From positions 203,119 to 267,118 of the IMG/VR virus record IMGVR_UViG_3300030329_006583: 64,000 bases of DNA; one strand, written 5' to 3'. Positions 1 to 56,243 of the stretch are shown here, one piece after another (position 1 is the stretch's first letter; each line of letters starts with the position of its first letter). The notes beneath the pieces were generated by a model. That model was given only the letters and a program-made list of their open reading frames with translations. It was not told the DNA's origin and did not search any database. A program made the position numbers and the translations under genes.

Positions 1-436
1 TTTTGCCTGACTCAGCACCGGTACGCATACCCAATGATTCATCCTCTTTATCATCATATCCCTGGTGGCCTTCTTCCATATCGTCCTCTGCCAGGTTTTC
101 TTCAACCAATTGGCGAATTCGTTGGCGTAAAGCGGCCTGCTTATTTAATTTCGCTTTTTCTTCTTTTACTATTTGGCGCAGCTGCCTCCTACCCAAGGCT
201 CGGCCTCGGCGGCGACGAGACTCATGTTTTTCTCTTTCATGTTCCAGCTCTTCTTCGTGAGCGCGCTCCATCTCTTCCCGATCATCCTTAATGTCTTTCT
301 CAAGATTATCAATATGATCCTTGTCATCATCAATGTTTTTACGAAGATTATCCAGCTCATCACTGATGCTATCCTCGGCAAGGCGCCGAACTTCTTCCTT
401 TACGATTTTTCTCAATTGTCTCTTTGTGATTCTCAT
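1..436 (-). CDS. Tagged acidic/coiled-coil protein, 3'-truncated by the window edge (MRITKRQLRKIVKEE...)
   Basis: Hand-translated from ATG at 436, open to base 1; three tag-like helices (RQLRKIVKEE, RQLRQIVKEE, LRQRIRQLVEE); not in the ORF track. Confidence 0.8.
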   Translation of the reverse strand, partial: MRITKRQLRKIVKEEVRRLAEDSISDELDNLRKNIDDDKDHIDNLEKDIKDDREEMERAHEEELEHEREKHESRRRRGRALGRRQLRQIVKEEKAKLNKQAALRQRIRQLVEENLAEDDMEEGHQGYDDKEDESLGMRTGAESGK

Positions 437-726
437 CCTCTCATTCTCCTTGCCATTCCCAGCTGTTGTCCCACATTTTGCGCATCAACAGTATCCCCTT
501 GATCCAAATCCTGTTGGCGCTGTTGTGTTAATTTCTTAACTTGATCCGCCGAGGCTTGTTCCTCGTCGACATCATCTCCACTTAATGAAGTATCCATTCC
601 CATGTCACCCACGGCAAGAAAACCTTCATCATCATCACTTTTCTCCTGGGGGGCTGTATAACCCACAACCTGTTCCCGCAGAATCTCCCTTATTACATTT
701 CGCAATCTGTACTCTGTAACTCTCAT
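433..726 (-). CDS. Small tagged hypothetical protein
   Basis: N-term MRVTEYRLRNVIREILRE; ATGA overlaps with neighbours. Confidence 0.75.
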   Translation of the reverse strand: MRVTEYRLRNVIREILREQVVGYTAPQEKSDDDEGFLAVGDMGMDTSLSGDDVDEEQASADQVKKLTQQRQQDLDQGDTVDAQNVGQQLGMARRMRG

Positions 727-1034
727 GCAGTTGTCACCCTACCTATTAACATCATACTGTCACCCTCCGTATCGCCACCTATAATTACGGAGCGTATCTT
801 TTGGCACAATCCCTTTACCCATTCTTTCAAACCCAATCGTTTTGTGGGTACCGGAATTTGCATACATTGTTTGGTATAGGCTTTCATAATAAAACGGGCG
901 GCCAAACGAGAACCATATTTTTTAGCAATTACATGAACAATTTGTTGGGTTTTTGGGTTTAACTCAACAAACATCTCACGTAATTCTGACCTGGTTGGCA
1001 ATTGCCTGTTTTTCATTTTATTCACCGTAATCAC
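723..1034 (-). CDS. Hypothetical protein
   Basis: ORF tiles between neighbours; probable start at MKNRQ. Confidence 0.6.
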   Translation of the reverse strand: MITVNKMKNRQLPTRSELREMFVELNPKTQQIVHVIAKKYGSRLAARFIMKAYTKQCMQIPVPTKRLGLKEWVKGLCQKIRSVIIGGDTEGDSMMLIGRVTTA

Positions 1035-1269
1035 TTATCAACTCGCTGGCATTTTGTTTGCGGGCCCTATCTGCTGCGGCTTGTAAAAAATCAGCCATAG
1101 TAATACCAGCTAACGCCGGTGCTTGTTCCACCGAGATGTCATCGCGTACTAGTCGAATGGCCTCATCTAAATACATGTGGAAAATATCGGTAACATGATC
1201 CCGAGCTGCCTCAGTGTTAAATTGTTCATGAATTATTTTTTGAAGTTGTTTACGAGTAATTTTCATCAT
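1018..1269 (-). CDS. Small tagged hypothetical protein
   Basis: N-term MKITRKQLQKIIHE; GAGG RBS upstream. Confidence 0.75.
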   Translation of the reverse strand: MMKITRKQLQKIIHEQFNTEAARDHVTDIFHMYLDEAIRLVRDDISVEQAPALAGITMADFLQAAADRARKQNASELISDYGE

Positions 1270-1436
1270 TTTAACCTCAGTTTTTCACGCTACATGTGAC
1301 CGGCTAAAACGATATTCAGGTATGCCAGTCTCATTTTATTTTAACGTGGGCGCAGACTCACTATCCCACCGGTTTAATACCACCAATTTAAATATAACAA
1401 AAGGTGACATTAATGCCACCCTTTATTCAATAAAAA

Positions 1437-1544
1437 TTATTGCCCTGTAATCTTCTTAAGCTGGGCCATACACCATTTTAGGCCAACCCATGCAAAAGGG
1501 GCCACCACGGAACCCACAAGGGCACCCCACATAAACTCTGTCAT
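1437..1544 (-). CDS. 35-aa single-TM membrane peptide (MTEFMWGALVGSVVAPFAWVGLKWCMAQLKKITGQ)
   Basis: Hand-translated; GGAGG RBS upstream; below the ORF-track cutoff. Confidence 0.6.
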   Translation of the reverse strand: MTEFMWGALVGSVVAPFAWVGLKWCMAQLKKITGQ

Positions 1545-1610
1545 AATACACCTCCTACCTAATATTACAAATAATATTTAAAACATAAATATCAAAATTA
1601 CAATTCTTTA

Positions 1611-2441
1611 TTACGCCGGCTTACCAAACCCATCTTCACTTGCATTAACAATGTGGTGATTGAGTTCATAGGCATGATTTAATATTTCATCCGCATATCT
1701 CTCTATGCGGTTCACCAAAGATACGGGAACACCGCGTTCAAATAATCCGGTTTTCCCCAATCTCTCTACCACCGCATCTGTTACATCATTGACCCGACGT
1801 GAATGTAACATATCGGATTCTAAATTTTCCTTTAATAAACCCTTTATGACACTTCGCAATAAGGATTCATTTTGACTATCTTCTACAACCTCCAATATAG
1901 CCCTCCAGTGACTTGGGCTAATACCGGAAGGTATTCCACCACTTGCAGATTGTAAAGCCATGAGTGCATCCCCGTATTTCTTTATTTGCCGTGGACTGGG
2001 ATTGCTGAGAAGGTTGTGCAACATATCTGCCAATTTTACCTTTAGCGATGCCGAATCTCCCAATAAGGACAATACATAATCCTGATACGGCACATTCTTT
2101 TCATGGGTCAATTGACGTACCACACGTAATGCCTCCCGCCCGGATTGCACATCCCCGAATGAAGCGGTGATCATTGAGCTCAGATCCTCTGAGGATTTTA
2201 TATTCCCTAATTCAATTGCATCTTCGAGGGTATCATGTAAAAGAGCAATTGCGCATAGTGTTTGATCCTCTGGGTAGTATTTTTCTATTATCTTAGCAAC
2301 GGCCATGGGATGCTCAATATAGGGTTCCCCACTGCGCCTAGTTTGTCCTAGGTGTGCTAGCTGTGCCGTTGCCATGGCATCATCAACATCGGCGCTAGCC
2401 ATACCACAAATTTCACTAATATATTGGCGCAATAGTTTCAT
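1611..2441 (-). CDS. HD-domain (p)ppGpp hydrolase-like protein (RelA/SpoT small alarmone hydrolase, Mesh1-like) with tag
   Basis: AHLGQTRRSGEPYIEHP, ALLHDTLED, VKLADMLHN; tag at N-term and after the domain. Confidence 0.85.
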   Translation of the reverse strand: MKLLRQYISEICGMASADVDDAMATAQLAHLGQTRRSGEPYIEHPMAVAKIIEKYYPEDQTLCAIALLHDTLEDAIELGNIKSSEDLSSMITASFGDVQSGREALRVVRQLTHEKNVPYQDYVLSLLGDSASLKVKLADMLHNLLSNPSPRQIKKYGDALMALQSASGGIPSGISPSHWRAILEVVEDSQNESLLRSVIKGLLKENLESDMLHSRRVNDVTDAVVERLGKTGLFERGVPVSLVNRIERYADEILNHAYELNHHIVNASEDGFGKPA

Positions 2442-3463
2442 CCTTCAATCTCCGGTATACCTGTTATCCTGTGACCGGGTCGGACCCCATTCCTTTTAAA
2501 CCAACCGCGGTTCATCTCCAATGCGCATCGGGCAGGGCCATTCGAATAAGTATGTTCCTCCGTGAAGGGTTCCATGTCCTCAATGTTTAAAATATACCCA
2601 TCATCATCCGTATACGCAATAGACAAGGGGAGAGGTGTGTTCCTCATCCAGAAAGATCTTTGATTAGAATCTGGAAAAACAAACAGCATCCCGCTATCTT
2701 CCCCCATCCCGCGACGGAACATTAGGCCCTGTTGACGAGTGGCAGGGGTTGAAGCAATCTCAGTATCGACCTGTATGCCATTTACCATCACCCCCTCAGA
2801 CAATGTTGTAGTTGTTTTGGTTGCGTACCTGACCTCACCCTCATAGATGAACTCATCAACCTGATTAAACCCCAACCCCTGCGCTTCTCCCAATATCTCA
2901 ACTTCAGCCATGCACTCATTTCGAGCACCACCCACCAAATCAGCGCCATTCCACTTTGGTAATTCATCTTCTAAATCGGGAACCCAAAAACCATAGTCTT
3001 CAAGCTCGTCAAACAGAAGCTCGCTAACACCAATCGCTTCTACGTCTTCTTCTTCCAGCTCCTGGATATCTCGGATGTCTTTATCAATCATGTACTTAAC
3101 AATCTCTACAATCGATGATCGATCAAAACACACACTTGAATCCATCACGTCTCGAAAGAAACCGTAGCCCTTATCGAAGAAAGTTGATTTTGATAGCAAT
3201 TCATCGTATGTCTCTTCATCCCAATCCAACTTTTCAAAGTAAAAGTCTTTCAAGGCAGACTCTGATATCATACCGAGCGTGTCTTCACCGTTATAAAGAA
3301 ATAGCACACGGGAATAATTCTCTGCTGCCTCACGAAGCATATCACCGATATCAAAAGGAGTGTTGCTTTCGTACTCAGGCTGGATATCTACTACGACAAG
3401 ACTGCCTTTCGATCCCTGCTCTTGCTCTAGCAATACCCTTATGTATTCGCGGAGTAGTTTCAT
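2438..3463 (-). CDS. Tagged fusion: isochorismatase/cysteine-hydrolase-like domain plus C-terminal DUF192
   Basis: LVVVDIQPEY...VGGARNEC; EIASTPATRQQGLMFR...GMLFVF...FWMRNTPLPLSIAY...ALEMN. Confidence 0.7.
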   Translation of the reverse strand: MKLLREYIRVLLEQEQGSKGSLVVVDIQPEYESNTPFDIGDMLREAAENYSRVLFLYNGEDTLGMISESALKDFYFEKLDWDEETYDELLSKSTFFDKGYGFFRDVMDSSVCFDRSSIVEIVKYMIDKDIRDIQELEEEDVEAIGVSELLFDELEDYGFWVPDLEDELPKWNGADLVGGARNECMAEVEILGEAQGLGFNQVDEFIYEGEVRYATKTTTTLSEGVMVNGIQVDTEIASTPATRQQGLMFRRGMGEDSGMLFVFPDSNQRSFWMRNTPLPLSIAYTDDDGYILNIEDMEPFTEEHTYSNGPARCALEMNRGWFKRNGVRPGHRITGIPEIEG

Positions 3464-5173: not shown

Positions 5174-6021
5174 TAATAATATTTTGCCCCCATAACATTA
5201 ACATCAGGATACTGCTTTTCCATCTTTTCTTTCAGATGGCCTATCGCGGGGGTCATCATCTTCCCAAAGTCAATAATGCTAGCAGGCTTTGCATACATGC
5301 TGAAAAACTTGTCAACAAGCCGGGTCGCTACTTTTTGGCCACCTTTATCTCCCCGGGTTTTCATATAATCAATATACCAGTAATCCGGCCCTCGTTGGTG
5401 ATAATCTAAAAACCCGATGATGCAAACGTCGCTCACCCCTGGGATTATCTCATCTAGCACTGGTTTTTTAAGTTTTCTTCTGCCACCCTTTGTACGTTTT
5501 CGCCACCTTTCAATTTCTGCGAAATAGTGATCATGAGGCCTCGGGGGATCTGTGACAGAAGAATCACATAAGGCCAAACGTTTCACATTGCCAGAACTGT
5601 GATATTGGAGCGGAGAATCAACTTCACGGAACTCAATTCCCTCTGTCAAAATTCCCCTGACAACTTGACGTACAGACTCTTTCGCATGGGGTGTATCGTT
5701 AATCGTTTTAAGCTTGGCCATGTCAACACCAGAAATGCCGGTCAGATCAGCAATCAGATCATCTATGGTATAACCATCACCTCGCTCAAACCGAACCACC
5801 AGATCGGCCATCTGCTTTCCTTCAGGTGCAGGACGAAGCGAAGCATCCTGGCGCACCGTTATCACATCCGGCAGTCCCCGAATCTTTGTGAGAATGTGTT
5901 CCATGGTAGGCTTATCAGGAGAATCAATGCTGACTCGCACTGTTACGGAGAGATCATCTAACACTGGTTCAGCAGCCGTTTGTTCCAATAAGCCCCTTAT
6001 GTACTCGCGTAGTAGTTTCAT
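5173..6021 (-). CDS. Tagged two-domain protein: ACT-like domain plus GNAT acetyltransferase-like domain
   Basis: ILTKIRGLPDVITVR; WYIDYMKTRGDKGGQKVATRLV (acetyl-CoA motif A-like); tag at N-term and between domains. Confidence 0.6.
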   Translation of the reverse strand: MKLLREYIRGLLEQTAAEPVLDDLSVTVRVSIDSPDKPTMEHILTKIRGLPDVITVRQDASLRPAPEGKQMADLVVRFERGDGYTIDDLIADLTGISGVDMAKLKTINDTPHAKESVRQVVRGILTEGIEFREVDSPLQYHSSGNVKRLALCDSSVTDPPRPHDHYFAEIERWRKRTKGGRRKLKKPVLDEIIPGVSDVCIIGFLDYHQRGPDYWYIDYMKTRGDKGGQKVATRLVDKFFSMYAKPASIIDFGKMMTPAIGHLKEKMEKQYPDVNVMGAKYY

Positions 6022-7100
6022 TACCATTCCCCCGCTTGTTTGGCCCTGGTACGCATGTGTTCCGGAGTCAATGTGTTAGGAAATGTCTTAACTACATCGA
6101 CTGCACCCTTCGATAAAAAGATCGCCTGCTGTGGTTCATTTTTGTGAATCAAGCCGGTACTGCGATCATAAAAGGCGTCCATACCGATCCCTCTCAATAT
6201 GGCGTTCCACTTTCCAATAGGGGCAGCTGCCTTATCACCGGCACCTGGACTCCCACCTGCTATCATCTTTGTCAATAGCCATATGAGATCAATAGGCCTC
6301 TTTCGGGCTTTCTTTTGTGCCTCTTCATATATGGCAGAATTTCTCATGATCGCCGTTATGGGATTAATTCCTTGGGCCACAGCCTCCTCTACCTTCTGCA
6401 CCTCATCTTCAAATGAGGTACCTGATAAACCAAATCTCTCCACGGTTTCCTGTGTATACAATTGTTTCATCGCATCATATTGCTCTGAAAGTGTGAACTC
6501 AGGTGACGTCACCAAATTTGCTCCTGCGCTGGTTTTTAATATTGAAATGAAAGGTTGTTGTGTAGCAAAAGGCAATCGTTCAGAACCTTTAGGCGAAGTA
6601 AGTTGTTGAACTGTTTTGGGAAAGAGGGGGTAAGCATAAATTCCGGCGGGTGTGTTATAATCAGAGCCGGGGTTGACACCCACCTTATTAATGGCTGTGA
6701 AAGTAATATAATATTCCGGCTTTTCCGATGAATTCCCATCGGCATATGATTGCAATTCATTTTCAAGGGTAGGAAGTTCCACACCTTCTTTATCGGCACG
6801 ACGGGCCTCAGCCAATGTCATTTGTATATACTTGCGCAAGAGCTTCTCATTCATCTTTCCTGTCATCCTCTCCAACATGTCCATGGCCTCTTCCCTGGTT
6901 ACAAAGTAATCACCCTCAATGGTGTAGGGTTTCTCTGAGCCATCAGGTAGAATATAACCTGTACCCACATAAAACCCGTTGGAATTTTGCATCACCTGTA
7001 ATTCTGTGGGACCAAATCCTGGCCGGTGCGGCTTGGGCGACCCTGCCTTTTGAAGTAAAGAATTTCTAAACCACTTAATTTGAAAACCCTTTGGCCACAT
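6021..7100 (-). CDS. Two-part hypothetical protein with internal tag (MNEKLLRKYIQMTLAE)
   Basis: Long ORF; C-terminal part has YNTPAGIYAYPL and GLIHKNEPQQA motifs. Confidence 0.7.
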   Translation of the reverse strand: MWPKGFQIKWFRNSLLQKAGSPKPHRPGFGPTELQVMQNSNGFYVGTGYILPDGSEKPYTIEGDYFVTREEAMDMLERMTGKMNEKLLRKYIQMTLAEARRADKEGVELPTLENELQSYADGNSSEKPEYYITFTAINKVGVNPGSDYNTPAGIYAYPLFPKTVQQLTSPKGSERLPFATQQPFISILKTSAGANLVTSPEFTLSEQYDAMKQLYTQETVERFGLSGTSFEDEVQKVEEAVAQGINPITAIMRNSAIYEEAQKKARKRPIDLIWLLTKMIAGGSPGAGDKAAAPIGKWNAILRGIGMDAFYDRSTGLIHKNEPQQAIFLSKGAVDVVKTFPNTLTPEHMRTRAKQAGEW

Positions 7101-7824: not shown

Positions 7825-8184
7825 TTAGCTCTTGAGTTTTCTACCTGGTCTTGTTGCATGCTCATGTGTTTTTGATGCTGCCGCTTCAACCATTCTGGCG
7901 GGCACGTTCTTGAGCGTTTTCTTGCCGAACACAATATCATAATGGCCAATGGCACCGTTCCTGTCAAGACTATGCCACACAATTTTACCCACCCTTTTAG
8001 CCGGGATCCCATATGCCTCCTGCAAAGCTGAAGACTTCAGCTTACCATGTGTCAGTCACGTGTGCCCGATCAATTCTTCCTCTTCGGGATCCAACTCCGC
8101 TTGTTCCATACCTGACCCGAATGGTGCAGCTTTCTTCAATTCTTCTTTAATAATTTGCCTAAGTTGTCTCTTCGTAATTTTCAT
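7825..8184 (-). CDS. Tagged 119-aa His-rich protein with in-frame UGA at codon 43; candidate selenoprotein
   Basis: MKITKRQLRQIIKEE...LIGHT-TGA-LTHGKLKSSALQEAYG... is in frame with the track ORF 7825..8025; hairpin follows the UGA. Confidence 0.7.
8025..8043 (-). promoter_or_regulatory. SECIS-like stem-loop AAGCUGAA-GUC-UUCAGCUU, 12 nt after the UGA (8056-8058)
   Basis: Perfect 8-bp inverted repeat; apical GU at +24/+25 counting the U of UGA as +1. Confidence 0.6.
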
Positions 8185-9640: not shown

Positions 9641-9718
9641 TGGTGGGCCCTCTGGGATTCGAACCCAGAACTGACGGTTTATGAGACCGGCGCTCTAACC
9701 TGATTGAGCTAAGGGCCC
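9641..9718 (-). tRNA. tRNA with CAU anticodon, most likely tRNA-Ile2 (lysidine substrate)
   Basis: GGGCCCTTAGCTCAATCAGGTTAGAGCG-CCGGT-CTCATAA-ACCG...GGTTCGAATCC...AGGGCCCACCA; C4:G69 and C5:G68 pairs; encoded CCA; adjacent to tilS. Confidence 0.9.
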
Positions 9719-17202: not shown

Positions 17203-17679
17203 TTAACCCAGGCCCTGGAATCCATTGGAACCTGTGAGCATCTGCCGTATGGGATTTGACGGAACGGTTGTTAAACCCGCTATAACGTGAATCGTCGCCG
17301 CACCACCATAACCTCCGTCACGGAAAAAAACCCCGCTGGCCTTTACCTCATACGGGCCGGCATAGGTACCTCCCTCAAACACCTTTATGTAATTACGATT
17401 AGAACCGGTGAGATTGTAGCCTGGGTTGGGGGTTGTGACCCCGGCGGTGGCACTTGAACCATGTGTACCATTTGCGGTAAAACCCATCAAAATAGGCGCA
17501 GTTCCACCAACTCCATGCTGTGCCACGTAGATCCATCGCGATACAAAAGGGAAGTGAAAATGGATGAAAGGATTAGAACCATCGAGCTCACCAGTAAGCG
17601 AGGAACTCACGTATGGAATCCCGGATAACTGGTACTCTTGCACGTTGTTGTGATCATTTGCAGGCCAATTTAAACTCAT
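17203..17679 (-). CDS. Beta-rich hypothetical protein, paralog of 17684..18124
   Basis: MSLNW..NHN..YQ.SGIP.V.SS...FPFV.RWI...LTGSNGFQG.G shared. Confidence 0.8.
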   Translation of the reverse strand: MSLNWPANDHNNVQEYQLSGIPYVSSSLTGELDGSNPFIHFHFPFVSRWIYVAQHGVGGTAPILMGFTANGTHGSSATAGVTTPNPGYNLTGSNRNYIKVFEGGTYAGPYEVKASGVFFRDGGYGGAATIHVIAGLTTVPSNPIRQMLTGSNGFQGLG

Positions 17680-17683
17680 TTAA

Positions 17684-18124
17684 TCACCCAATTCCCTGGA
17701 AACCGTTTGAGCCCGTAAGCAATCGCCTCAAAGGATCGGCTGGAACATTTGTTAAGCCCGCTATTACCTGAACGGTGCTGGCGCCGCCTTCACCTTGGAA
17801 ATAAAGATCTGTGCAACGTACCTCTATGGGTCCCAAGGATTTCCCGGCATCGACCACCGCGTAATTCATGTTTGAACCCGTGGGACTGTAAGCGCCTAGG
17901 TTTGCAGCCAGAATACCGTTTGCGGTAAACGACATTTTAAACCCATTACCTTGTTCAGTACATACCACTTGAATCCAGCGTGTAACAAATGGGAATCTTA
18001 TATGAACCAAATCACCGGCACCGGCAGTCACCTCATTATCTAGCGATGAGGTAACAAACGGAATTCCTGACTGTTGATATGCTGGCACATAATTATGATT
18101 GTTTCCAGCCCAATTTAAACTCAT
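17684..18124 (-). CDS. Beta-rich hypothetical protein, paralog of 17203..17679
   Basis: Same conserved blocks. Confidence 0.8.
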   Translation of the reverse strand: MSLNWAGNNHNYVPAYQQSGIPFVTSSLDNEVTAGAGDLVHIRFPFVTRWIQVVCTEQGNGFKMSFTANGILAANLGAYSPTGSNMNYAVVDAGKSLGPIEVRCTDLYFQGEGGASTVQVIAGLTNVPADPLRRLLTGSNGFQGIG

Positions 18125-41154: not shown

Positions 41155-41637
41155 CTAATCTGCAACCTGCCCCAAGGCATAACCCGTGGCTATGGTCACT
41201 ACTATCCCACCAATCAACCCAACAGAAAACCAAAATTCACCAGATTCATACCATGGTGTAGGTTGAAATTTACTCTCCAAAAAACCAATTTGATCTTCCT
41301 TGATTTCCAGGATTTGATCATGTTTAAACTTTAGGGCATCCAGCTCCGCAATTTTTAGATCTAATTGCAATTTATGCTGAATAGATAATACCTCTAAAGC
41401 CTTATCCTTTTCAATCTTGCACTGTTTGTCTTTGTTTTCTAATTCAACCGCAAGATTGGCGGCTGCCTCAGTACTGAAAAGTGTACCTGCAAATGGGGCT
41501 TTTGCACCCTTTTGAATTGTAATTATTTTTTCACCCGGGGAATCTGCAAAAGCGGAAATGGGATAAATACATACAAAACCAATGAAAAAAAGGTTAGTGA
41601 AAAATGCTATCCATTTTATCATGATTATCTTTAACAT
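41155..41637 (-). CDS. Membrane protein with signal peptide, coiled coil and C-terminal TM
   Basis: SAFA signal end; C-term GLIGGIVVTIATG. Confidence 0.65.
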   Translation of the reverse strand: MLKIIMIKWIAFFTNLFFIGFVCIYPISAFADSPGEKIITIQKGAKAPFAGTLFSTEAAANLAVELENKDKQCKIEKDKALEVLSIQHKLQLDLKIAELDALKFKHDQILEIKEDQIGFLESKFQPTPWYESGEFWFSVGLIGGIVVTIATGYALGQVAD

Positions 41638-42743
41638 TAGTCATTTAACCCTGCCAGCCTGTGCCACCTTTCCAAAACAAGATCGTCGCGATTTTCCCGA
41701 CTTTCCTTTTGGGGATTGCCCAAAGCGTTTCCAATAGACGTCAGCATCGGGATTAACTCGTCGGCATTGCCGTCCACAATATGAACATTGTCATGTGTTA
41801 ATCCACCGCCGGTCCCAATATAGGCGCCTGACCATCGATGGTGACCGTCTAAAATTTCCCCAGCAGAGGTCACGAATGCACCACCCATATCACTCAAATC
41901 AGTATTACCCGTCCCCTGCAGAAATGCAAATAGCAATGACTTGCCAGCAAGAATATTACTTTGGGTAGGAATCATGGCAGAATTTGCAAGGGAACCTCCC
42001 ACTTTAACATCAATATTATCGTCCCCTTGATCACCGTCATATTTTCCTTTTGTCAAAAACGCAAGAGCCTTCCCTACCGGATCTGCACCGCCGCCGGGCA
42101 TTGCATTCATTCCATGCCGAGGATATTTATCTTCTCTTACTAATCCCTCTTCTTTCGGCTCGGGTTGTTTTCCTGCTTCAAATTCCTTCTTTTTTTCATC
42201 AGAAAGGGTATCCAACCAAGCATCCAAACCTTCTTTGTCGGCGGCATAACTTGCCTCAATATCCACGTTGAATTTACCCCCGGGCGTCAATGCATCCTTC
42301 ACCGCAGCGGCATCCTCACCCTCCAGGGCTGGCATATCTTTTTTTGCAGGCGCAGTGTTGGGCAGGGCAGCACCAACTTTTTCTATCCTATTTGTCAATG
42401 ATTCCTTGCCTACTGACTCTGCCCATTTCTTAATGGCATCAGCGCCGCCGGCTTTTGCAATCGCGCCATTAGCCCAACCTGTTGCATTCATCATCGCTTG
42501 AATCAACGGGGCATTCTCGTCTCCCGACACCAATTGTTCATATGCATCTGCACCACCAAGATCGGCAATATTTGTCTTCGTGGTAACATCAATAAATGCG
42601 GCGTCGTCGGTGGTATCCCCTTGTTCAAACAACAAGGTCGCCAGGTTTGGTGAATTGGTAGTTTTTAAATCTTTGGTTTCTTGCAAAATTAAATATCGTA
42701 ATTGAGCCGGTGTTAACTTTTTCATTCTTTTCTTCTGCTCCAC
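41637..42743 (-). CDS. Tagged protein with ParB/Srx-like domain
   Basis: IPTQS...ILDGHHRW; N-term LTPAQLRYLILQE; C-term ERWHRLAGL. Confidence 0.7.
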   Translation of the reverse strand: MEQKKRMKKLTPAQLRYLILQETKDLKTTNSPNLATLLFEQGDTTDDAAFIDVTTKTNIADLGGADAYEQLVSGDENAPLIQAMMNATGWANGAIAKAGGADAIKKWAESVGKESLTNRIEKVGAALPNTAPAKKDMPALEGEDAAAVKDALTPGGKFNVDIEASYAADKEGLDAWLDTLSDEKKKEFEAGKQPEPKEEGLVREDKYPRHGMNAMPGGGADPVGKALAFLTKGKYDGDQGDDNIDVKVGGSLANSAMIPTQSNILAGKSLLFAFLQGTGNTDLSDMGGAFVTSAGEILDGHHRWSGAYIGTGGGLTHDNVHIVDGNADELIPMLTSIGNALGNPQKESRENRDDLVLERWHRLAGLND

Positions 42744-44897: not shown

Positions 44898-45592
44898 TTG
44901 ATTGCCTTCCCGATTTTTTCAGCCTTTTTAACCCTTTTCTCAATTACATCCCAATCTAATTCTTTCATCATAGCAAAAACATACGTCTTTCTGTCATTCA
45001 AATAATCACGATAATAAGAATTTTCCGAACAATCTAAAACAACAATTGGAAACGATGCAAAAGGAACATTAATATTATGCAGATCTACACACACATTAAT
45101 ATAACGTTGAAGAAAGGTATTATAGACAGTGACTGCCCACCCATTTCTAGATGACATAGCGCATGCAATAAAATCCTTTTGCCACGCATCAAAAGAACCA
45201 AAATCCCTCTCCAACCTTATAAAAGTAAGAGAATCCATTACTAATTGACTTTTGAGATCACTAATATTTTCAAAAAACAAAGCATTCAAAAATGAAGCAT
45301 TAAGATTGTAGGTTTCATCAATCTTCAAAGAACGAAATTCTGAATTATTGGCATTTGCATCTTCACGATTAACAACATCCAATTCAATACTAATACGATT
45401 AAGGGTATCTATGTATCCTTCAAGCAATTCAAAATGAGCACGTTTATTTTTTTCACTTAAAAATTCTGTAGCTAAATTATATCGTTTGGCTTGGGTAACA
45501 TATGCCTCCTTAATGGTGGCGTGTCCTTCTTTTTCTTCCAACCCCAACGTTTCCCTGATCGTTCTTTTTATTTCATCATCAGATATGCTCAT
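44894..45592 (-). CDS. Fe/Mn superoxide dismutase-fold protein with degenerate metal ligands
   Basis: RDFGSFDAWQKDF, GWA, LDCSENSYY in place of DxWEHAYY. Confidence 0.75.
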   Translation of the reverse strand: MSISDDEIKRTIRETLGLEEKEGHATIKEAYVTQAKRYNLATEFLSEKNKRAHFELLEGYIDTLNRISIELDVVNREDANANNSEFRSLKIDETYNLNASFLNALFFENISDLKSQLVMDSLTFIRLERDFGSFDAWQKDFIACAMSSRNGWAVTVYNTFLQRYINVCVDLHNINVPFASFPIVVLDCSENSYYRDYLNDRKTYVFAMMKELDWDVIEKRVKKAEKIGKAIK

Positions 45593-45593: not shown

Positions 45594-46019
45594 TTATTTA
45601 ACCTCATATTCTTTTTCAAATTCTTCTTGATCCACCACAAACACCTCTTCATCAGGATCATCGGGTATTAATTCTGTTTGTATTTTATCTAAATTAATTA
45701 ATTCATCTTCACCTAATATTGCCGCAATTTTTTTATCACTGATCAAAGTATCCTCTTGATCGGGTGGGGGATCAAAACGGGGTTCATCAGGCAATCTTAA
45801 AACAATGTCAATTTTACCGGTCTCCGGATCTTCCAAAACATCATCCACAGTGTATTCATATTGAGAATCTTTATGCCTCACCTTTAAATCACGCGTTATA
45901 AGAATATTACCGTCGTCATCTATCACGTCAGATTCCCAAAGGGCTTCGTTTAAACGATCCTCGTAATAATTACGCAATAAATCAATTATAACATTTTCTG
46001 ATAAAATTTTATTTTTCAT
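45594..46019 (-). CDS. Hypothetical protein
   Basis: LLRNYYEDRLNE tag-like N-term. Confidence 0.7.
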   Translation of the reverse strand: MKNKILSENVIIDLLRNYYEDRLNEALWESDVIDDDGNILITRDLKVRHKDSQYEYTVDDVLEDPETGKIDIVLRLPDEPRFDPPPDQEDTLISDKKIAAILGEDELINLDKIQTELIPDDPDEEVFVVDQEEFEKEYEVK

Positions 46020-47130
46020 CCTTTAGTCCCGCCATTTTTAACCAACGACTATGCATGGTGTTATTATTGGAAATTAATGATTCTCTTAACACCCCTTTAA
46101 TCTCTGTGTAAGTATAAAATACCCCTTCAGAAAATACTGGTTTTCCAATAATCTGATTTAGTGCCCCGCCTAGGGCGCGCGTTTGGCTCTTCTTTTTAGA
46201 TTTAGCCTGATCCATTGCACCTTTGATATCTTTAAGGTTTTGACGAGTTAATGATATGCCGTCTCCCCCTGGGGGCGCTTCGGTAGCACCAGGTGAAGTT
46301 TCTGTGGCAATGTCTTTCATTTCATTGTCCAAACCGGCATCAGTAACAATGGCATCAATTGCTTGTACTGGATCGTCGTCGCCAGGCTGCGCGGCGTCAT
46401 CTAAATCTGTGGCTGCACTTTTCAAAAATGAATCTAATTCATCAGGTGTTAAAGTAAGCATTTCCTCCACAAACTGTTGCTGTTGTAATCCAAAACCAAT
46501 ATCACGGGTGGAGCCCAATCCCAGGCTACCTAACATGTTGGAAAAACCTTGTCCCAACCCACCGAAGACCCCTTTCGGTGCTTTCAGTTGTGCAATAATA
46601 GCCTTTTCAAAATCAGTCCTACTAGGGATTCCTGCAATATCTGCCGAGTATAGATCCAATAAGCCACCCAATGTTTTGTCACGATCTTCTTCATTGGTTG
46701 CAATTTTGGCACCAAGATCCCCTAATGCGCCTTGCACAGTTTGAAAGGCATTCGCAATCGAACCCTGTAAAATCTGCACATTTGCAAATAACTTCGAAAG
46801 TTGCTTCATGGGATCACCCAACAGGTTGGAAAGACTTATCCCCGTCTTTAATCGGTTTGCCGCAACTTCTTTTTTGGCGTTATTAAGAGCATCACGAAGA
46901 TTACCCATTTTTTGGGGGACCTTACCTAATATATCATCGAGGCTCTTCGTGGCCTTATCTGCAGCTGCATTCAAATCTGACACCACTGCATCAGCCTGAT
47001 TTGTTTGTTCCCATAACAATCCGGTCAATCGATGATTCTTAAATGATTCTTCAATCAACGCCTCTTGATCTGTTTGGTATTTTTCACATTTTAGCCATGC
47101 GTTTTCAATTAATCTTAAATACATCACCAT
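46009..47130 (-). CDS. Helical protein ending in RWLKMAGL, candidate internal virion protein
   Basis: C-term motif shared with 41637..42743. Confidence 0.7.
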   Translation of the reverse strand: MVMYLRLIENAWLKCEKYQTDQEALIEESFKNHRLTGLLWEQTNQADAVVSDLNAAADKATKSLDDILGKVPQKMGNLRDALNNAKKEVAANRLKTGISLSNLLGDPMKQLSKLFANVQILQGSIANAFQTVQGALGDLGAKIATNEEDRDKTLGGLLDLYSADIAGIPSRTDFEKAIIAQLKAPKGVFGGLGQGFSNMLGSLGLGSTRDIGFGLQQQQFVEEMLTLTPDELDSFLKSAATDLDDAAQPGDDDPVQAIDAIVTDAGLDNEMKDIATETSPGATEAPPGGDGISLTRQNLKDIKGAMDQAKSKKKSQTRALGGALNQIIGKPVFSEGVFYTYTEIKGVLRESLISNNNTMHSRWLKMAGLKDEK

Positions 47131-49264: not shown

Positions 49265-50257
49265 TTATTCCAAAATATGATATCCCACAAAATTGGTGGA
49301 ATTTTGAACCGCAATCGAATCTTTTTCCAAGCCTAATTTTTTAAGCCGATGAGATACCAAAATTTTCCCCCAATCTTTCCAATATGAAACATCATCAATC
49401 TCAAGGCCATCAATTTCCTCGATTAACGCATTAATTTCTTCAACGTCATTCAATAAACGTAGATGTTTTTCAAATAACATCATTTCCTTAATCGGCATAT
49501 CCTTTGATAATGCCGGCATTTCACCGCGAGCCAATTGAAGCATTTTTGATTGACCTACTTCCTCGGAACGTAAAATATTCTCAACCATTTCAAAATGCCT
49601 TTCATAAATGTGAAGTGAATTACTGATATGTGTATATGTCCCTAACTCCACACCTAGTTCCAAAGCCAACATTTCTTGAAACATGGTAAATGCAGGAATA
49701 TCATAGGCAATCCCAAGTATCAAATCTGATGATCTCATATTAGTAATCATATGCAATTTTTCATCCCTGATCAAAAATTGCAAGGTGAGAGTACAAGGCA
49801 CATCCAGCTTTGCACTAACAGAATCCCATGGGCTCCGAATGTGAATGACGGCCCTCCTAGAATCTGGATCTTTCTTCAATTCATCAATAATGTATTCCCA
49901 CTGAATCAAGGAAAAATTAGCAATCCTGCCATGTGGTTTAAATATCCTGGCACCATATGCCGAATTAGCTGTCTTACCATCATCACTAATATTATTCCAA
50001 AATGACGAATAATTTGCGATCCACTCTGTTGAGTCATCCCCGGAAAGATACCACAATAACTCCGCAATCATATAATGCATTGAAAATTTACGTGGCCGAA
50101 CATAAGGAATTCTATTCCTTGGGTTTTTCAGCACAAACTTCACTGCCAATTTCTCTTTCACTTTTTGGCCACGGGGACTGGAAATATAATCAGGGGAATT
50201 GTAGACGTCATTTAACAAACTTAAATAACAATCGGTAAAATTATCAAAATTACGCAT
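49265..50257 (-). CDS. Thymidylate-synthase-fold dCMP-modifying enzyme (hydroxymethylase-like)
   Basis: ELLWY, DSRRAV, VPCT, MRSSDLILGIAYD (Asp at the specificity position), SLHIYE. Confidence 0.8.
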   Translation of the reverse strand: MRNFDNFTDCYLSLLNDVYNSPDYISSPRGQKVKEKLAVKFVLKNPRNRIPYVRPRKFSMHYMIAELLWYLSGDDSTEWIANYSSFWNNISDDGKTANSAYGARIFKPHGRIANFSLIQWEYIIDELKKDPDSRRAVIHIRSPWDSVSAKLDVPCTLTLQFLIRDEKLHMITNMRSSDLILGIAYDIPAFTMFQEMLALELGVELGTYTHISNSLHIYERHFEMVENILRSEEVGQSKMLQLARGEMPALSKDMPIKEMMLFEKHLRLLNDVEEINALIEEIDGLEIDDVSYWKDWGKILVSHRLKKLGLEKDSIAVQNSTNFVGYHILE

Positions 50258-52155: not shown

Positions 52156-55100
52156 TTAAGTTAACAGTTGTTTAAATTTACCAAAATTAGTAGACATTCC
52201 AAATTCATTTTGATTGATCTCAGCAACACAAATTGAATAAGCCGGAACATCTGTTTTGCCATCCCAACCCCACATAAACATTTTTGAAACTTTCCCTGAT
52301 GATCCTGTAATCTCAAGCAAAAGATAGGGTCGTTTGTTTTTTGTCAATTTAGAATGTGCAGCCTTTACAACAAACCAATATAAATCTTTGCCGTGATATT
52401 CATCAATTGCTGCAATTTCTTTTTCAGCAAATTTTTGTTTAATTTGTTCCGGAATTAAAAGACTGGCGTCAAAACTACCAAGCAAAGAAGTACTCATCTC
52501 AGCCCTTTCCTTGGCACCCCATTCATCACACCTTTCTTCTTCCAGTATGGCCTGACGATAATTGTTAATCCCACGTTCAGGATCACTTTTTGTTCGCTTT
52601 CTTAAATCATTATAGTGATCAATCAAAACATGATGCATATGCTTATAACTGGAAAATTCTTTGTTATCTCCTACCACATCCATGGATTCAAAAGCGCCAA
52701 TTTTAATTAAATTTTCCAATGCGCGTTTATTAAATTTTGAATGCCTCCAAATTCCTTCTTCATCCCACAACATTTCCCTTATGTTTCGATAAGGTCTTTT
52801 TTCAACAATTTCATCAATTGCAGAAGATCCCACGCCTTTACAAGAAAGAAATGAAGGCATAAACTTCTTGCCGTCAAGGATAGTCCAACTATCTGTGGCA
52901 TAATTAACGTCAATAGGGATAATATCATATCCCAACGCCCTAACCTCTGAAAATGCTTTGGCACGCTTATCAGCATTTGATGACATGGATTCCAGGTATG
53001 CACAAAGCCATTCCTCTTCATAATACGTCATCAGCCATGCACAAAAATATGAATCCATTGCATAAGAAACAGCGTGACTCATATTAAAACCATACCCGGC
53101 AAAATAAAGAATCTTTTCGTAAAGATCACTAGCAACTGAATTTGGTACCCCGTTTTTAACGGCGCCTTCAACAAAACTGCTTTTTAATTCATTAGCCTTT
53201 TTAATTGCCGCTGCACCACCGGAGATGCTGCGTTTCATGATAGCCTTTCTGACTTTATCGCATTCATCCTTGGGAAAACCTGCGACTACATTAGCTAATT
53301 TCATTACCTGTTCTTGAAAAATAATCATCCCATACGTAGGCTCTAAAACCTCCTTAATCAACGGATGTTGGTAATCAATATTCTCAGGTTCCAGCTTGTT
53401 TTTAATGTATAATTTATGAACATTGGCCGCCAGAGGCCCTGGGCGATAAATAGAGGTAAGAGTAGCAATATCAATTAAATTACGAGGCTTTGCCTTCATA
53501 AATAGTCGCTGGGCACCCCTATTTGTTAATTGAAAGATTCCGCCCCACCTACCGGAATGATATACATACTCATACACCTGTGGGTCATCAAAATCTATCA
53601 CACTTGGTGCCATGTTTTCTTCGTACCATTTTCTTACATCTGCAAATGCCGGTTTATCTACACCGCAGTGCCTCTGCAAAATCAATTCAATGGCACGTTC
53701 TACAATGCGAAGTGTTTCCAAACCCAGGAGATCAAATTTAATCCAACCAAATTCTTCCAGGTGTTTAAAATTTGTACCTTCCACCCACGGCGTTTGGGTT
53801 TCACCTTTGGCCAAAATAAGAGGCATTCTTTGGGGAACATTCTCTGAAACAATAACCCCGCCTGCATGACGACCTAGCGCCTTGTTTTGCTTAAACAATA
53901 CTCCCATGGGATTAGCCACTTCCGGGTATTTATCAATGAATTTTTTAAATGATTCACTGTGTTTAATTGCATCTTCGTATTTTAACACAAAAAGATTCTT
54001 GTCTTCACCGTGTTTGGTAACAGCTTTACGAACATCCTGTTCCACCGTCCGGGTGGCTGCATTGGCTTCATCAAAAGGAATCCCATAAAATCTCGATATA
54101 TCTTTCACCAACGTCTTTAATTTAAATGTGTTATAATTGGAAATTGGAACAATGTTCTCACCCCCAAAATTATCTTTAAGCAAATCAATAAGCAAATCCC
54201 GATTGGAAATATCTGTGTCAATATCAGGATATTCTAAACGATACTTGCTCAAAAAACGTTCAAAAAGAAGGTTGTATTTAATAGGATCGACGTCGGTGAT
54301 ATAAAGAACATAATTAACCAGTGAACCCGCACCGGAACCGCGGCCTGGACCGATTAACATCCGATCTCGAGCAACATCCAAAATTGCTTTCATCGTTAAA
54401 AAGTAGGCACTAAATTTGCGTTCTTTAATAACCGCCAGTTCCATTTTTAACCGATCGATATATTCTGGCTCATCAGCTAACCCACGTTTTATGAGTCCCT
54501 CTTTACACGCCTCCAATAATGCTTTATCGGCAGTCAAACCCTCGGGAATAACATAAGAAGGCAATTTAGGACTTTGATCGGGGTGAATGTCCCCAATTTC
54601 TTCATACACAATATCATGAGTACGTTCAATTGCCCCATGAATTATGTTATCATCATAAAAATCATACTGTTTAGTTGTGTCTTGATAGGATTCCCAAACC
54701 TGATTGGCGTTTTTGGGATAAAGTTCACACTTTAAATCCTCTTTGGACTGAGGGAGTTTGGAAGGATCAAAATCACGATAATTAAGCCAGCCCAATTTTT
54801 TATAAAGTTCCCGCTCCTTCCAATGTTCAGGACGGGCATAATGAGAATCTGTGGTTACAACGAGCTGTTCCTGCAAACCGGCATTGTCTGCAAATTTCAT
54901 AATGGCCCTATTGACCAGGTGCTGTGCCGGTAATTGGTTGAATTGAAGCTCTAGTTTAACATTCCCACGACCCACTGAATGTTCCAGTTGTTCATAAGCA
55001 TTCCCTACCCCCAATAATACCTTTTCAAACAAATTCTTATCATCCAACAAACTGGCATGTAAATTATCAAATTCTACTTCCTGTAGGTGTTTAAAAACCT

Positions 55101-55758
55101 CATAACATAAGGGACCGCCCAAACATGCGGTAGAGATCATCAGGTGACCTCCCTTCGCCGCTTCTTTTAGCATCTTATAATCAACTCGAGGAAACCGATA
55201 AAACCCCTCCATGTACCCACGAGACACCAGGTGAAACAAGCGTTGAAGACCTTCCGACGTTTTTGGAAGCACCACCAGGTGGTGGCGGCGCTTAATTGGA
55301 TCATAAAACTTACCTGATTTAGTTTCCTCCTCGTTTTCAATTGTTAGGCTAGCTGCATCTGTAGAAATATCAAGGGTTTCATCATCACCATCTAATTTAG
55401 CAGTGAGGGGGGTAACTAATTTTTCCCGTTGGGCACGCAATACAGCTAGTGCATCAGTGTCACCTTTCTTTGCCGCTTTTTGAATTTCGTAATCAAGCTT
55501 CCATGCCTCAAGATCCGGATGAACATACATTTCACAACCAGGTACAAACTTAAAATTAGCACCGGCTTTATTCAATTTTTCCGCATGCAAATAAGCATGT
55601 GCAAAACTATTCATATGGCCATGGTTCGTCAAACACCACGCATCCATTCCATTTCCCCTCACAAAATCAATGTGTTCCTGAGGGTAATCCAACCCATCAA
55701 AAGTGGAAAATCCATCATGGGCATGCAGGCTTACAAAACGATTCGGTTCTCTACTCAT
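52156..55758 (-). CDS. dnaE: DNA polymerase III alpha subunit (family C)
   Basis: PHP HAHDGFS/TNHG/DSHY; GPGRGSGAGSLV; PDIDTD; KFDLLGL; YGFNMSHA. Confidence 0.95.
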   Translation of the reverse strand: MSREPNRFVSLHAHDGFSTFDGLDYPQEHIDFVRGNGMDAWCLTNHGHMNSFAHAYLHAEKLNKAGANFKFVPGCEMYVHPDLEAWKLDYEIQKAAKKGDTDALAVLRAQREKLVTPLTAKLDGDDETLDISTDAASLTIENEEETKSGKFYDPIKRRHHLVVLPKTSEGLQRLFHLVSRGYMEGFYRFPRVDYKMLKEAAKGGHLMISTACLGGPLCYEVFKHLQEVEFDNLHASLLDDKNLFEKVLLGVGNAYEQLEHSVGRGNVKLELQFNQLPAQHLVNRAIMKFADNAGLQEQLVVTTDSHYARPEHWKERELYKKLGWLNYRDFDPSKLPQSKEDLKCELYPKNANQVWESYQDTTKQYDFYDDNIIHGAIERTHDIVYEEIGDIHPDQSPKLPSYVIPEGLTADKALLEACKEGLIKRGLADEPEYIDRLKMELAVIKERKFSAYFLTMKAILDVARDRMLIGPGRGSGAGSLVNYVLYITDVDPIKYNLLFERFLSKYRLEYPDIDTDISNRDLLIDLLKDNFGGENIVPISNYNTFKLKTLVKDISRFYGIPFDEANAATRTVEQDVRKAVTKHGEDKNLFVLKYEDAIKHSESFKKFIDKYPEVANPMGVLFKQNKALGRHAGGVIVSENVPQRMPLILAKGETQTPWVEGTNFKHLEEFGWIKFDLLGLETLRIVERAIELILQRHCGVDKPAFADVRKWYEENMAPSVIDFDDPQVYEYVYHSGRWGGIFQLTNRGAQRLFMKAKPRNLIDIATLTSIYRPGPLAANVHKLYIKNKLEPENIDYQHPLIKEVLEPTYGMIIFQEQVMKLANVVAGFPKDECDKVRKAIMKRSISGGAAAIKKANELKSSFVEGAVKNGVPNSVASDLYEKILYFAGYGFNMSHAVSYAMDSYFCAWLMTYYEEEWLCAYLESMSSNADKRAKAFSEVRALGYDIIPIDVNYATDSWTILDGKKFMPSFLSCKGVGSSAIDEIVEKRPYRNIREMLWDEEGIWRHSKFNKRALENLIKIGAFESMDVVGDNKEFSSYKHMHHVLIDHYNDLRKRTKSDPERGINNYRQAILEEERCDEWGAKERAEMSTSLLGSFDASLLIPEQIKQKFAEKEIAAIDEYHGKDLYWFVVKAAHSKLTKNKRPYLLLEITGSSGKVSKMFMWGWDGKTDVPAYSICVAEINQNEFGMSTNFGKFKQLLT

Positions 55759-55788
55759 TCAAACTTACCTCTTCCGGAAAATAAAAAA

Positions 55789-55818
55789 GCACTCAATTGT
55801 ATTGTAACAATTGAGTGC
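55789..55818 (-). terminator. 12-bp perfect hairpin with T-tract; its loop is the -10 box of the dnaE promoter
   Basis: GCACTCAATTGT-TACAAT-ACAATTGAGTGC-TTTTTT. Confidence 0.7.
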
Positions 55819-55830
55819 CAAATTTACACG
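55801..55830 (-). promoter_or_regulatory. Promoter CGTGTAA-N17-TACAAT upstream of dnaE
   Basis: Recurrent motif with TG extended -10. Confidence 0.65.
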
Positions 55831-55847
55831 AATATTGATAAATTAAT

Positions 55848-56243
55848 CTATTTTTTTGTAGAAGTCCCAACAATATATTGCGCAATCTCTTCTTTGATTA
55901 TTTGACTCATGCGTTCTGGACTAATGCCTTCGCCAATTTTCACGCCGGTTCCTTCGGAAGATGCTTTATCAAGCGCCTTAGTGCCCAATGTTTCAGCATA
56001 ATTAAGCATTTTTTGAAAAGCAGGCACATCGTGTTGTGCCATGGCGATCAGTACCTGAAGGATTATGGCCATTTCATCATTAAATTTTACAGGAATATTG
56101 GCCACTAAGTCAGCGGCATCTGTTTTAAGGGCCTTTGTAAATTCTGCGTTTGTCAAACGAGCCTGATCATCTTGTTCCAATAAAAAACGTAATGCCAACT
56201 CTTCTTTTATGATTTTTCGCAATAATCTATTGTTTAGGTGCAT
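55848..56243 (-). CDS. Protein tagged at both ends
   Basis: NRLLRKIIKEEL..LLEQ and ERMSQIIKEEI. Confidence 0.75.
   Translation of the reverse strand: MHLNNRLLRKIIKEELALRFLLEQDDQARLTNAEFTKALKTDAADLVANIPVKFNDEMAIILQVLIAMAQHDVPAFQKMLNYAETLGTKALDKASSEGTGVKIGEGISPERMSQIIKEEIAQYIVGTSTKK

Follow-up and report, generated by a model that had tools for sequence, protein, structure and literature searches.

Packaging of proteins into a phage head by a short peptide is known from phage T4, where any protein fused to the capsid-targeting sequence (CTS), MKTYQEFIAE, gets packaged (PMC8442874), and the internal proteins of T-even phages, diverse as they are, have only this sequence in common (PMC3012670). 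The 10–20-residue propeptides of gp24 and of the internal proteins count as CTSs, all proteases of the gp21 type cut after Glu, and a propeptide of 65 residues is removed from the T4 capsid protein gp23 (PMC5694885), which places the gp23 cut after FLTE (FLTE|AE). The gp24 protein of T4 starts with MAKINELLRE. Here we analyse a peptide of 14–15 residues, hereafter the tag, that is carried by many unrelated proteins encoded in the last 64 kb of the 267,118-bp contig IMGVR_UViG_3300030329_006583; this stretch of 64,000 nucleotides is called the window throughout. The consensus of the tag is a helix that reads MKITKRQLRRIIKEE or MKLLREYIRELLxE. A preliminary description of the same DNA had taken it for an address that docks cargo on the prohead core for delivery at infection. 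The results presented below strongly support a modular address peptide that acts at the protein level, and five lines of evidence point, indirectly, to the prohead core as its destination.

A modular peptide under protein-level selection

Direct translation of the window reveals one motif in two flavours at the starts of open reading frames (ORFs), MK(I/L)TKRQLRxIIKEE and MKLLREYIRxLLxE, and finds it at every N-terminal coordinate given in the preliminary description. A simple regular expression for the motif matches on the minus strand only, and all credible genes of the window (GC content ~41%) lie on that strand. To avoid circularity, a hidden Markov model (HMM) was built from 519 tags of other contigs, with the window and the other loci of its contig excluded, and was run on the six-frame translation of the window. 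This independent model yielded 17 matches of at least 8 bits, 13 of them of at least 10 bits, all in minus-strand coding frames, compared with one match of at least 8 bits in the reversed sequence and a mean of 0.05 in shuffled sequences (top decoy, 10.2 bits). The sites are listed below and are referred to in the text by their first nucleotide on the coding strand.

Robust sites (at least 8 bits), N-terminal or at probable starts:
8140..8184 (-), N-terminal tag MKITKRQLRQIIKEE of a 42-codon ORF that ends at a conserved in-frame TGA, 42.1 bits
392..436 (-), N-terminal tag MRITKRQLRKIVKEE, 32.0 bits
1222..1266 (-), N-terminal tag MKITRKQLQKIIHEQ, 26.1 bits
35434..35478 (-), N-terminal tag KITKNRLRKIIGEV, GTG start, 20.5 bits
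4848..4889 (-), N-terminal tag MKLLREYIRELLVE, 18.2 bits
56199..56243 (-), N-terminal tag MHLNNRLLRKIIKEE, gene upstream of dnaE, kept in the L002 ortholog, 17.7 bits
44853..44897 (-), N-terminal tag MKLTKKYLKKLINEE ahead of a very acidic stretch, 16.5 bits
682..726 (-), N-terminal tag MRVTEYRLRNVIREI, 15.2 bits
3422..3463 (-), N-terminal tag MKLLREYIRVLLEQ of a protein with isochorismatase-like and DUF192 domains, 13.1 bits
5980..6021 (-), N-terminal tag MKLLREYIRGLLEQ, 12.9 bits
18304..18339 (-), tag MKHLRRFVRESV in a small ORF first placed at 18378, 11.0 bits
6807..6854 (-), tag MNEKLLRKYIQMTLAE, starting from a Met inside ORF 7100..6021, 9.8 bits
4243..4284 (-), N-terminal tag NLLREYIRALLVE, GTG start, 9.7 bits
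2409..2441 (-), N-terminal tag MKLLRQYISEI on an HD-domain protein (HD_4, residues 22–146), 8.5 bits

Robust sites, internal or C-terminal:
158..190 (-), second, internal copy RRQLRQIVKEE in the protein tagged at 436, 17.0 bits
20830..20877 (-), C-terminal copy TKELRKLIREELAKLC, then stop, 11.8 bits
30991..31035 (-), internal copy EKIRRIIREEIAAYL, 9.1 bits

Weaker variants (below 8 bits with the independent model):
33679..33738 (-), weak variant MKAITQEKLVRKYIRNILHE, among the seeds of the model trained on the window; independent model, 2.1 bits
36589..36636 (-), weak variant MNDRLLRKWVQVLLME, below 8 bits, seen in the sequence
38199..38255 (-), weak variant MEIMDNIRLRHMIRQILQE, 3.1 bits
42678..42725 (-), variant MKKLTPAQLRYLILQE, 3.5 bits
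41087..41146 (-), weak variant MSIKITKAVLENYLKRVLFE, by sequence only
45533..45592 (-), weak variant MSISDDEIKRTIRETLGLEE of a protein with a SOD C-terminal domain (Sod_Fe_C), seen in the sequence
36636..36686 (-), C-terminal variant NESLLRNYVREFVGGMG, then stop, 2–5 bits
34505..34549 (-), C-terminal variant QENMLRTYVRQIIMG, then stop, in a nucleotidyltransferase-like protein (weak Citrate_ly_lig match)
55869..55916 (-), weak C-terminal copy ERMSQIIKEEIAQYIV in the protein tagged at 56243, kept in the L002 ortholog, 5.5 bits
1818..1871 (-), weak internal copy NESLLRSVIKGLLKENLE in the HD protein, 3.9 bits

The total near 25 that was originally proposed is thus made up of 17 robust sites and about ten weaker variants. 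Two of the original coordinates call for correction: the copy thought to interrupt 6021..7100 is better placed at the Met at 6854, probably the true start of that ORF, and the ORF placed at 18378 probably starts at the Met at 18339. The two C-terminal copies at 36686 and 34549 have a sub-motif of their own in common, which recurs in three loci of relatives (L071, L076 and L204). In L002, the closest relative, both tag copies of the protein tagged at 56243 are conserved in an ortholog whose middle part has diverged.

The tag is absent from the housekeeping genes, as originally noted: none of the set identified by Pfam or tblastn (malate synthase, isocitrate lyase, ThyX, a ThyA-like protein, TK, dCMP deaminase, DnaE, GroEL, DnaK, DnaJ, PEPCK, a sigma factor, Def, IMPDH/GMPR, IscU and FEN) starts with it. 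The domains said to be attached to it fared unevenly. HD (HD_4), DUF192 and SOD C-terminal domains were recovered with Pfam, together with a weak nucleotidyltransferase match; for GNAT there was a weak, unconfirmed hint (E 0.045), and ParB and nuclease domains were not found by Pfam on tagged proteins even at E ≤ 1. PHROGs gave no meaningful match for the tagged proteins or for the head-module core proteins described below.

The relatives of the window are marine IMG/VR contigs of up to ~290 kb, the DnaE proteins of which are 50–74% identical to that of the window (gene at 55758..52156 (-)). From 2.3 Mb of related loci we gathered 550 non-redundant tags. Loci L020–L137 had been retrieved by a pattern covering the first nine residues, which biases those positions; at the positions outside the pattern, conservation reaches 81% (I), 94% (I), 86% (K/R), 91% (E) and 54% (E). 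After the Glu-Glu pair the information content collapses, marking a sharp boundary. Synonymous codons are freely mixed, with all six Leu codons used for the anchor Leu and the codons for Ile, Lys, Gln and Glu mixed as well, despite some bias (AGA, ACA, GAA-GAG), and the 80 nt upstream of 438 tagged starts hold a Shine-Dalgarno signal and nothing else. The free variation of synonymous codons shows that selection works at the level of the protein; taken together with the sharp end and the Shine-Dalgarno-only upstream DNA, this identifies the element as a peptide of 14–15 residues and rules out a repeat or a promoter in the DNA. The coding strand of the window has a single copy of the T4 late promoter TATAAATA, which precedes an untagged gene, and the capsid genes have no upstream element in common. 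The peptide itself reads as a charged helix with its hydrophobic residues at a/d-like spacing.

That the tag is a module is best seen in the 341-residue protein 3463..2438 (-), a search with which returned 363 relatives. Its first ~220 residues recur at ~80% identity joined to different C-terminal domains (DUF192, HD_4 or PAP2), and its VVVDIQPEYESNTPFDIG domain, at ~80% identity, is either preceded by the tag and a linker of ~10 residues or starts directly at MKLVVVDIQ. The tagless form, which begins at the first strand of the domain, accounts for ~25 among the 120 matches listed. The gene that comes after one tagless copy starts with MNLLREYIRELL; tagged and untagged versions therefore coexist within the lineage. 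AlphaFold2 models of this family comprise a helix at residues 2–15 (predicted local distance difference test ~70), a loop, a Rossmann-like domain (>90), a disordered linker and a DUF192 domain; fold searches matched the last to the DUF192 structures 3pjy and 3m7a, and the Rossmann-like domain weakly to isochorismatase-type cysteine hydrolases. The ~190-residue domain that follows the tag (VVVDIQPEYESNTPFDIG...) is itself ~80% identical across many marine metagenomic proteins (window 3463..2438 and P0158–P0270).

The cargo is diverse. BLAST grouped the 525 tagged modules of the fetched loci into 263 clusters, of which 180 have a single member, so that a peptide of 14–15 residues, mostly N-terminal, is common to hundreds of otherwise unrelated families. 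The cargo is short (median, 89 residues), net negative in 84% of cases and poor in Cys. A minority of tag copies are C-terminal. When 1.84 billion representative proteins, clustered at 50% identity, were searched with a profile built from 82 tags, 6,478 clusters matched at E ≤ 1e-3, with 191 reaching E ≤ 1e-10; the ten clusters looked at consist of unnamed or 'hypothetical' metagenomic proteins. The top scorers carry two to four tags each, 100–130 residues apart. GESK- or KESK-like residues, read as a translated ribosome-binding site, precede the internal tags, and the multi-tag proteins therefore look like fused tandem genes; they are apparently either that or polyproteins. Such proteins in a single frame include P0001, P0014, P0015, P0033, P0068 and P0088, and further examples lie in loci L112, L099 and L130.

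From cellular genomes the tag is almost absent, which runs counter to the notion that the motif might be equally frequent in unrelated proteomes. A degenerate DNA pattern for MKITKRQLR has 118 matching stretches in IMG/VR, which often form arrays with as many as ten per 10 kb. Bacterial and archaeal genomes totalling 596 Gb contain only 11, against ~3 that we estimate for chance, given how much information the pattern carries. Marine contigs of metagenome-assembled genomes (MAGs) account for most of these 11, and six of the 11, on three contigs, sit in dense tag arrays, as in the 17 tags within one 8-kb piece of NHDW01000006.1. The dense arrays suggest that these contigs are probably mis-binned phage genomes of the present lineage. 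The deposits concerned are labelled Methylococcaceae TMED69, Halobacteriovorax SP2999 and Peribacter UBA6535 (loci L265, L272 and L274 on NHDW01000006.1, 305,838 bp; L267 and L271 on PBIO01000025.1, 101,404 bp; and L269). Collectively, the tag exists in the window and its relatives, is selected at the protein level, is modular and specific to the lineage, and resembles the N-termini of head-module proteins, to which we now turn.

Head module of the relatives and the proposed destination of the tag

In contigs with the same DnaE family, Pfam recognises a full T4-type head module (Terminase_6N, Portal_T4, Peptidase_S77 at 94 bits, and Gp23). Over the LGELxHP and SSRGxGS blocks, the protease shares 32% identity with T4 gp21, and profile searches with T4 proteins place T4-type sheath and tube genes next to tag arrays. 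Gene order is kept in dozens of loci as well as in the cultured Flavobacterium phage vB_FspM_immuto: terminase, portal, a ~285-residue protein, the protease, sometimes a protein of the MSxNW...YQxSGIPYVTSS family, a ~150-residue protein, a ~90-residue protein, a few others, the scaffold and the capsid protein. Phage immuto encodes one tagged protein, gp080 (MKKSQLRQIIKEAL), and its gp072 is a tag-like small head-module protein.

Two of the proteins in this module resemble the tag. The ~150-residue protein, encoded between protease and scaffold, has an invariant N-terminus, RxxLKxIVKECLVEIL (also given as RSxLKxIVKECLVEIL), with which the tag profile aligns N-terminus to N-terminus and in register (hhalign E 4.7e-6, probability 86%). 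The ~90-residue protein starts with KLTPALLRKxVLEE and aligns more weakly (P 0.005); the window variant at 42725 is near-identical to this N-terminus, and the family of the protein that carries it is encoded directly after the capsid gene in some relatives. Tag arrays follow the capsid gene directly in L139 and L147, and the tail tube gene in L028, L037, L066 and L080. When capsid N-termini are aligned, (V/L)LRE|AN in the lineage takes the position at which T4 gp23 is cleaved, and the pattern [LIV][LIV][RK]E is common to this predicted site and to the tag ends IIKE, YIRE and LLRE. Like a CTS, the tag thus closes on hydrophobic-x-Glu, its 91% conserved Glu being preceded by I/V-I-K/R.

A further link to the head is provided by a second motif, RWxxLAG(L/I). 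All scaffolds of the lineage, that of immuto included, end with it (L139–L218), and the regular expression has 92 occurrences, 91 of which lie within 12 residues of a stop codon; most of the occurrences are in scaffolds and several in unrelated proteins, two of the latter in the window:

41646..41669 (-), C-terminal RWHRLAGL, two residues before the stop of protein 42743..41637
46024..46047 (-), C-terminal RWLKMAGL of the unrelated 373-residue protein 47130..46009

The first of these proteins combines the RWHRLAGL end with the N-terminal variant at 42725, and its family adjoins the capsid gene in relatives. Scaffold and non-scaffold proteins thus share RWxxLAG[LI] at the extreme C-terminus, and from these sequences we infer that the motif may be a second, rarer address that copies the scaffold C-terminus. 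We know of no description of a scaffold C-terminus reused as a portable tag. The scaffold N-terminus is T4-like (LYxEAIAEAK, to be set beside the T4 CTS MKTYQEFIAE and the T4 gp22 start MLKEQLIAEAQK), and neither this motif nor the NWAxLAF C-terminus of the ~150-residue protein was found on other proteins. An additional RWxxLAG(L/I) locus was noted at L219:15626-16867.

The MSxNW...YQxSGIPYVTSS...GSNGFxGxG family, which has no match in Pfam or PHROGs, is encoded directly after the prohead protease in most related phages and elsewhere in the window and a few relatives. The window holds two tandem paralogs:

18124..17684 (-), first paralog of the MSxNW family
17679..17203 (-), second paralog of the MSxNW family

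The case for the prohead core therefore draws on the S77 head module of the relatives, the alignment with the ~150-residue N-terminus, the match to the gp23 site, the arrays beside capsid and tail genes, and the C-terminal tag shared with the scaffold. On analogy with T4, the tag helix, usually at the extreme N-terminus, sometimes internal or C-terminal, and joined to its cargo by a short unconserved linker, would, like the T4 CTS, bring that cargo to the scaffolding core of a T4-type prohead and dock it there, by mimicking the N-terminus of the conserved core protein encoded between prohead protease and scaffold. The S77 protease would then cut after the conserved Glu of [ILV][ILV][KR]E, and the trimmed cargo would stay inside the capsid and leave with the DNA at infection; RWxxLAG(L/I), copied from the scaffold C-terminus, would serve as the second address. 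We regard capsid loading in the manner of the T4 CTS as the best explanation of the tag, on which our confidence is evenly poised; destination, cleavage and delivery are all inferred.

Several observations weigh against it. The T4-type head module was read from the contigs of relatives, the head genes of the window itself were not retrieved, and in a DnaE tree the clade that unites the contigs with observed T4-type genes does not include the window; what the window has in common with those contigs are the tags, the RWxxLAG motif and the two paralogs of the gene that usually follows the protease. Single members of the head-module families score 2–13 bits with the tag HMM, most of them only 2–8; the link between tag and head module, although real when profiles are compared, is therefore modest. 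The tag HMM gave no match above noise in the head region of T4 (best, 7.2 bits, in a non-coding frame), and the likeness to the T4 CTS is visual only. Tags also occur internally and at C-termini, unlike the T4 CTS. The 84% of cargo with a net negative charge, unlike the basic IPII and IPIII of T4, would make awkward passengers beside packed DNA. The hydrophobic moment of the tag (0.45–0.55, against 0.53 for the microcompartment peptide of PduD) is only moderately above that of shuffles (p ~0.06–0.08). Finally, some 17–27 tagged proteins in 64 kb would mean that a virion packages many more protein species than that of any phage studied so far.

These points leave room for other readings. In the one that survives best, which we consider unlikely yet worth keeping in mind, the tag is an address or interaction helix for a target other than the capsid: a replication or assembly factory, the phage DnaK, DnaJ or GroEL, timed degradation by Clp or Lon, or coiled-coil oligomerisation. 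A charged helix with a/d-like spacing and a flexible position would suit such a role, DnaK, DnaJ and GroEL are encoded in the same window, and many tagged genes of the window lie among metabolic and replication genes rather than structural ones. It leaves unexplained why the tag aligns in register with head-module proteins and agrees with the site predicted for capsid maturation, why arrays lie beside capsid and tail genes, and why tag and scaffold C-terminal motif occur together in one protein.

The same destination with another fate is a more doubtful proposition. Small acidic tagged proteins could be expendable parts of the core, like T4 gp22, gp67 and gp68, that build or size a very large prohead and are then degraded by the protease, their fragments being expelled with no delivery to the host. 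Most cargo being small and acidic, some of it may therefore be scaffold-like filler rather than injected effectors; the shortness, negative charge and low Cys content recall acidic scaffold proteins, the tag is common to conserved head-module proteins, and the proteins with two to four tags, spaced by ~100–130 residues, look like multivalent core builders. Folded enzymes and domains (HD, DUF192, isochorismatase-like, SOD C-terminal and nucleotidyltransferase-like) make little sense as filler, however, and 263 clusters among 525 modules look more like the repertoire of an arms race than like a structural set.

We think it improbable that the tag has no address function and is a leftover of duplication or recombination among tandem small genes, or an optimal translation start that hitch-hikes with them. 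The tandem arrays, the GESK or KESK residues that suggest fused genes, and the codon bias noted above all fit such an origin. Yet synonymous sites are free while the tag residues are 81–98% conserved across contigs as diverged in DnaE as those described above; the tag is kept in an ortholog with a diverged middle part, it is joined to enzyme domains that have nothing in common, one domain occurs both with and without it, and its C-terminal copies are inexplicable by translation initiation. A bacterial-microcompartment-type encapsulation peptide for a host or phage compartment, to which the PduD peptide MEINEKLLRQIIEDVLRDMK (PMC5405515), strikingly like MNEKLLRKYIQMTLAE at 6854, and the shared architecture of a terminal amphipathic helix plus linker might point, is barely credible, given that jackhmmer searches found no homolog of the shell proteins EutM, EutN and EutS in ~2.3 Mb of lineage loci including the window, that the tag co-varies with a T4-type head module instead, and that dozens of unrelated cargos per genome are unlike any microcompartment.

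Returning to capsid loading, we tentatively put forward a wider proposal, in which we have less than even confidence: that a widespread lineage of marine T4-related jumbo phages uses a two-part address code, the MKITKRQLRRIIKEE-type helix and RWxxLAG(L/I), to load dozens of proteins per virion from more than 6,000 cargo families, folded enzymes together with many small acidic proteins, which would be released by the protease in the capsid and would enter the host with the DNA, a ready-made arsenal for taking over the host and countering its defences. If the capsid address is true, thousands of uncharacterised marine phage proteins would be labelled as virion cargo in one step, giving a list of candidate injected effectors and anti-defence proteins; T4-style targeted packaging would scale from a handful to dozens of proteins per virion, the largest such cargo system known; and a new pair of short peptides would be available for loading foreign proteins into phage capsids. 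Even with another destination, a 15-residue motif on more than 6,000 unrelated clusters, almost absent from cellular genomes, is a large feature of the ocean virome.

Other features of the window

The tagged ORF at 8184 has an unusual end. Its TGA (...ELIGHT) is conserved in five contigs (the window, L078, L129, L038 and L107), and the ~75 in-frame codons that follow (LTHGKLKSSALQE...) are conserved as protein at 40–60% identity. An 8-bp hairpin lies 12 nt downstream of the TGA; four of its pairs show compensatory changes on both sides, with one A-C mismatch only among the five sequences, and Rfam gave no match for it. Elsewhere in this genome TGA is a normal stop. TGA and hairpin look like a candidate selenocysteine insertion element of the bacterial type or a read-through signal, and the full read-through product would be a tagged protein of ~118 residues. 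This region and further features of the window are as follows:

8184..7830 (-), tagged 42-codon ORF and downstream codons, with the TGA at 8058..8056 and the hairpin at 8043..8025
63992..61232, 16194..14725, 59710..58976 and 50257..49265 (-), glyoxylate-shunt, PEPCK and thymidylate-related genes, listed jointly
9641-9718 (-), tRNA-Met(CAT)
21648-21725 (-), tRNA-Arg(TCT)

The phage thus carries the glyoxylate-shunt pair (malate synthase and isocitrate lyase) and PEPCK, and thymidylate synthases of both the ThyX and the ThyA-like type in addition to TK and dCMP deaminase. Unusual for a phage is the 713-residue protein 20497..18356 (-), which combines a hydrophobic N-terminus with MopE-type copper-binding repeats (PF11617).

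No close cultured relative of the window was found. The sole megablast match of the window is its tRNA-Arg, ~92–95% identical to the tRNA-Arg of Klebsiella, Acinetobacter and Aeromonas phages. With a tagged protein as query, tblastn yielded a single, weak match. The DnaE of the window is ~29% identical to phage DnaEs, and the capsid protein of its relatives has its best matches, at 42–48%, in Flavobacterium phage immuto, Microcystis phage Mel-JY01 and Rhodothermus phage RM378. The moraphage lineage (PMC12619734) is a different one, which uses PolB. Strings of the tag or of the scaffold motif were not found in the literature searched.

Comparison with known systems

The closest parallel is the CTS of T4, found on IPI–III and Alt and as the gp24 propeptide. 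In both cases a short N-terminal peptide stands on otherwise unrelated proteins and ends in a hydrophobic-x-Glu site for an S77 prohead protease, a site that is predicted here; in both, hypervariable cargo genes have only the tag in common. The T4 prohead forms around a scaffolding core, and a prohead of the same type would be built by the relatives of the window, judging by their head module. MKTYQEFIAE and MAKINELLRE are alike in outline to MKLLREYIRE. The lineage consensus is nevertheless distinct, the copies are also internal, repeated two to four times or C-terminal, the cargo is mostly acidic, and where T4 has about five tagged genes, a genome of this lineage has dozens, with cargo families in the thousands. 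Moreover, the tag resembles the ~150-residue core protein and not the scaffold N-terminus.

Phages phiKZ, 201phi2-1 and SPN3US are likewise jumbo phages with a gp21-type protease that cuts after Glu and many processed head proteins, and they encode paralogs with conserved N-termini that are thought to be targeting signals (PMC5694885). Their propeptides, however, mostly exceed 100 residues and end in (A/S/G)-x-E, and the proteins concerned number eight to about twenty, compared with hundreds of families here; they also belong to an unrelated lineage, nucleus-forming and equipped with a virion RNA polymerase.

The PduD, PduP and EutC peptides share with the tag the form of an N- or C-terminal helix, of ~18 residues in their case, with a loose linker, and are sufficient to load foreign cargo into a shell; the AlphaFold2 helix at residues 2–15, followed by a loop, conforms to this layout, and the PduD peptide is very close to the tag in sequence. 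The shell of those compartments is built of BMC-H, BMC-P and BMC-T proteins, there is no protease step, and each holds few cargo enzymes.

In the scaffolds of other phages, such as P22 gp8 and phi29 gp7, contact with the coat is made by a C-terminal segment. RWxxLAG(L/I) lies at the extreme C-terminus of the scaffold as well, a likeness by position only, and differs in being reused on non-scaffold proteins. T4 already offers an example of packaging by a short cleavable peptide, and phiKZ-like phages offer one of long propeptides; the novelty of the present case lies in the distinct consensus, the flexibility of position, the companion C-terminal tag copied from the scaffold and the scale of thousands of cargo families.

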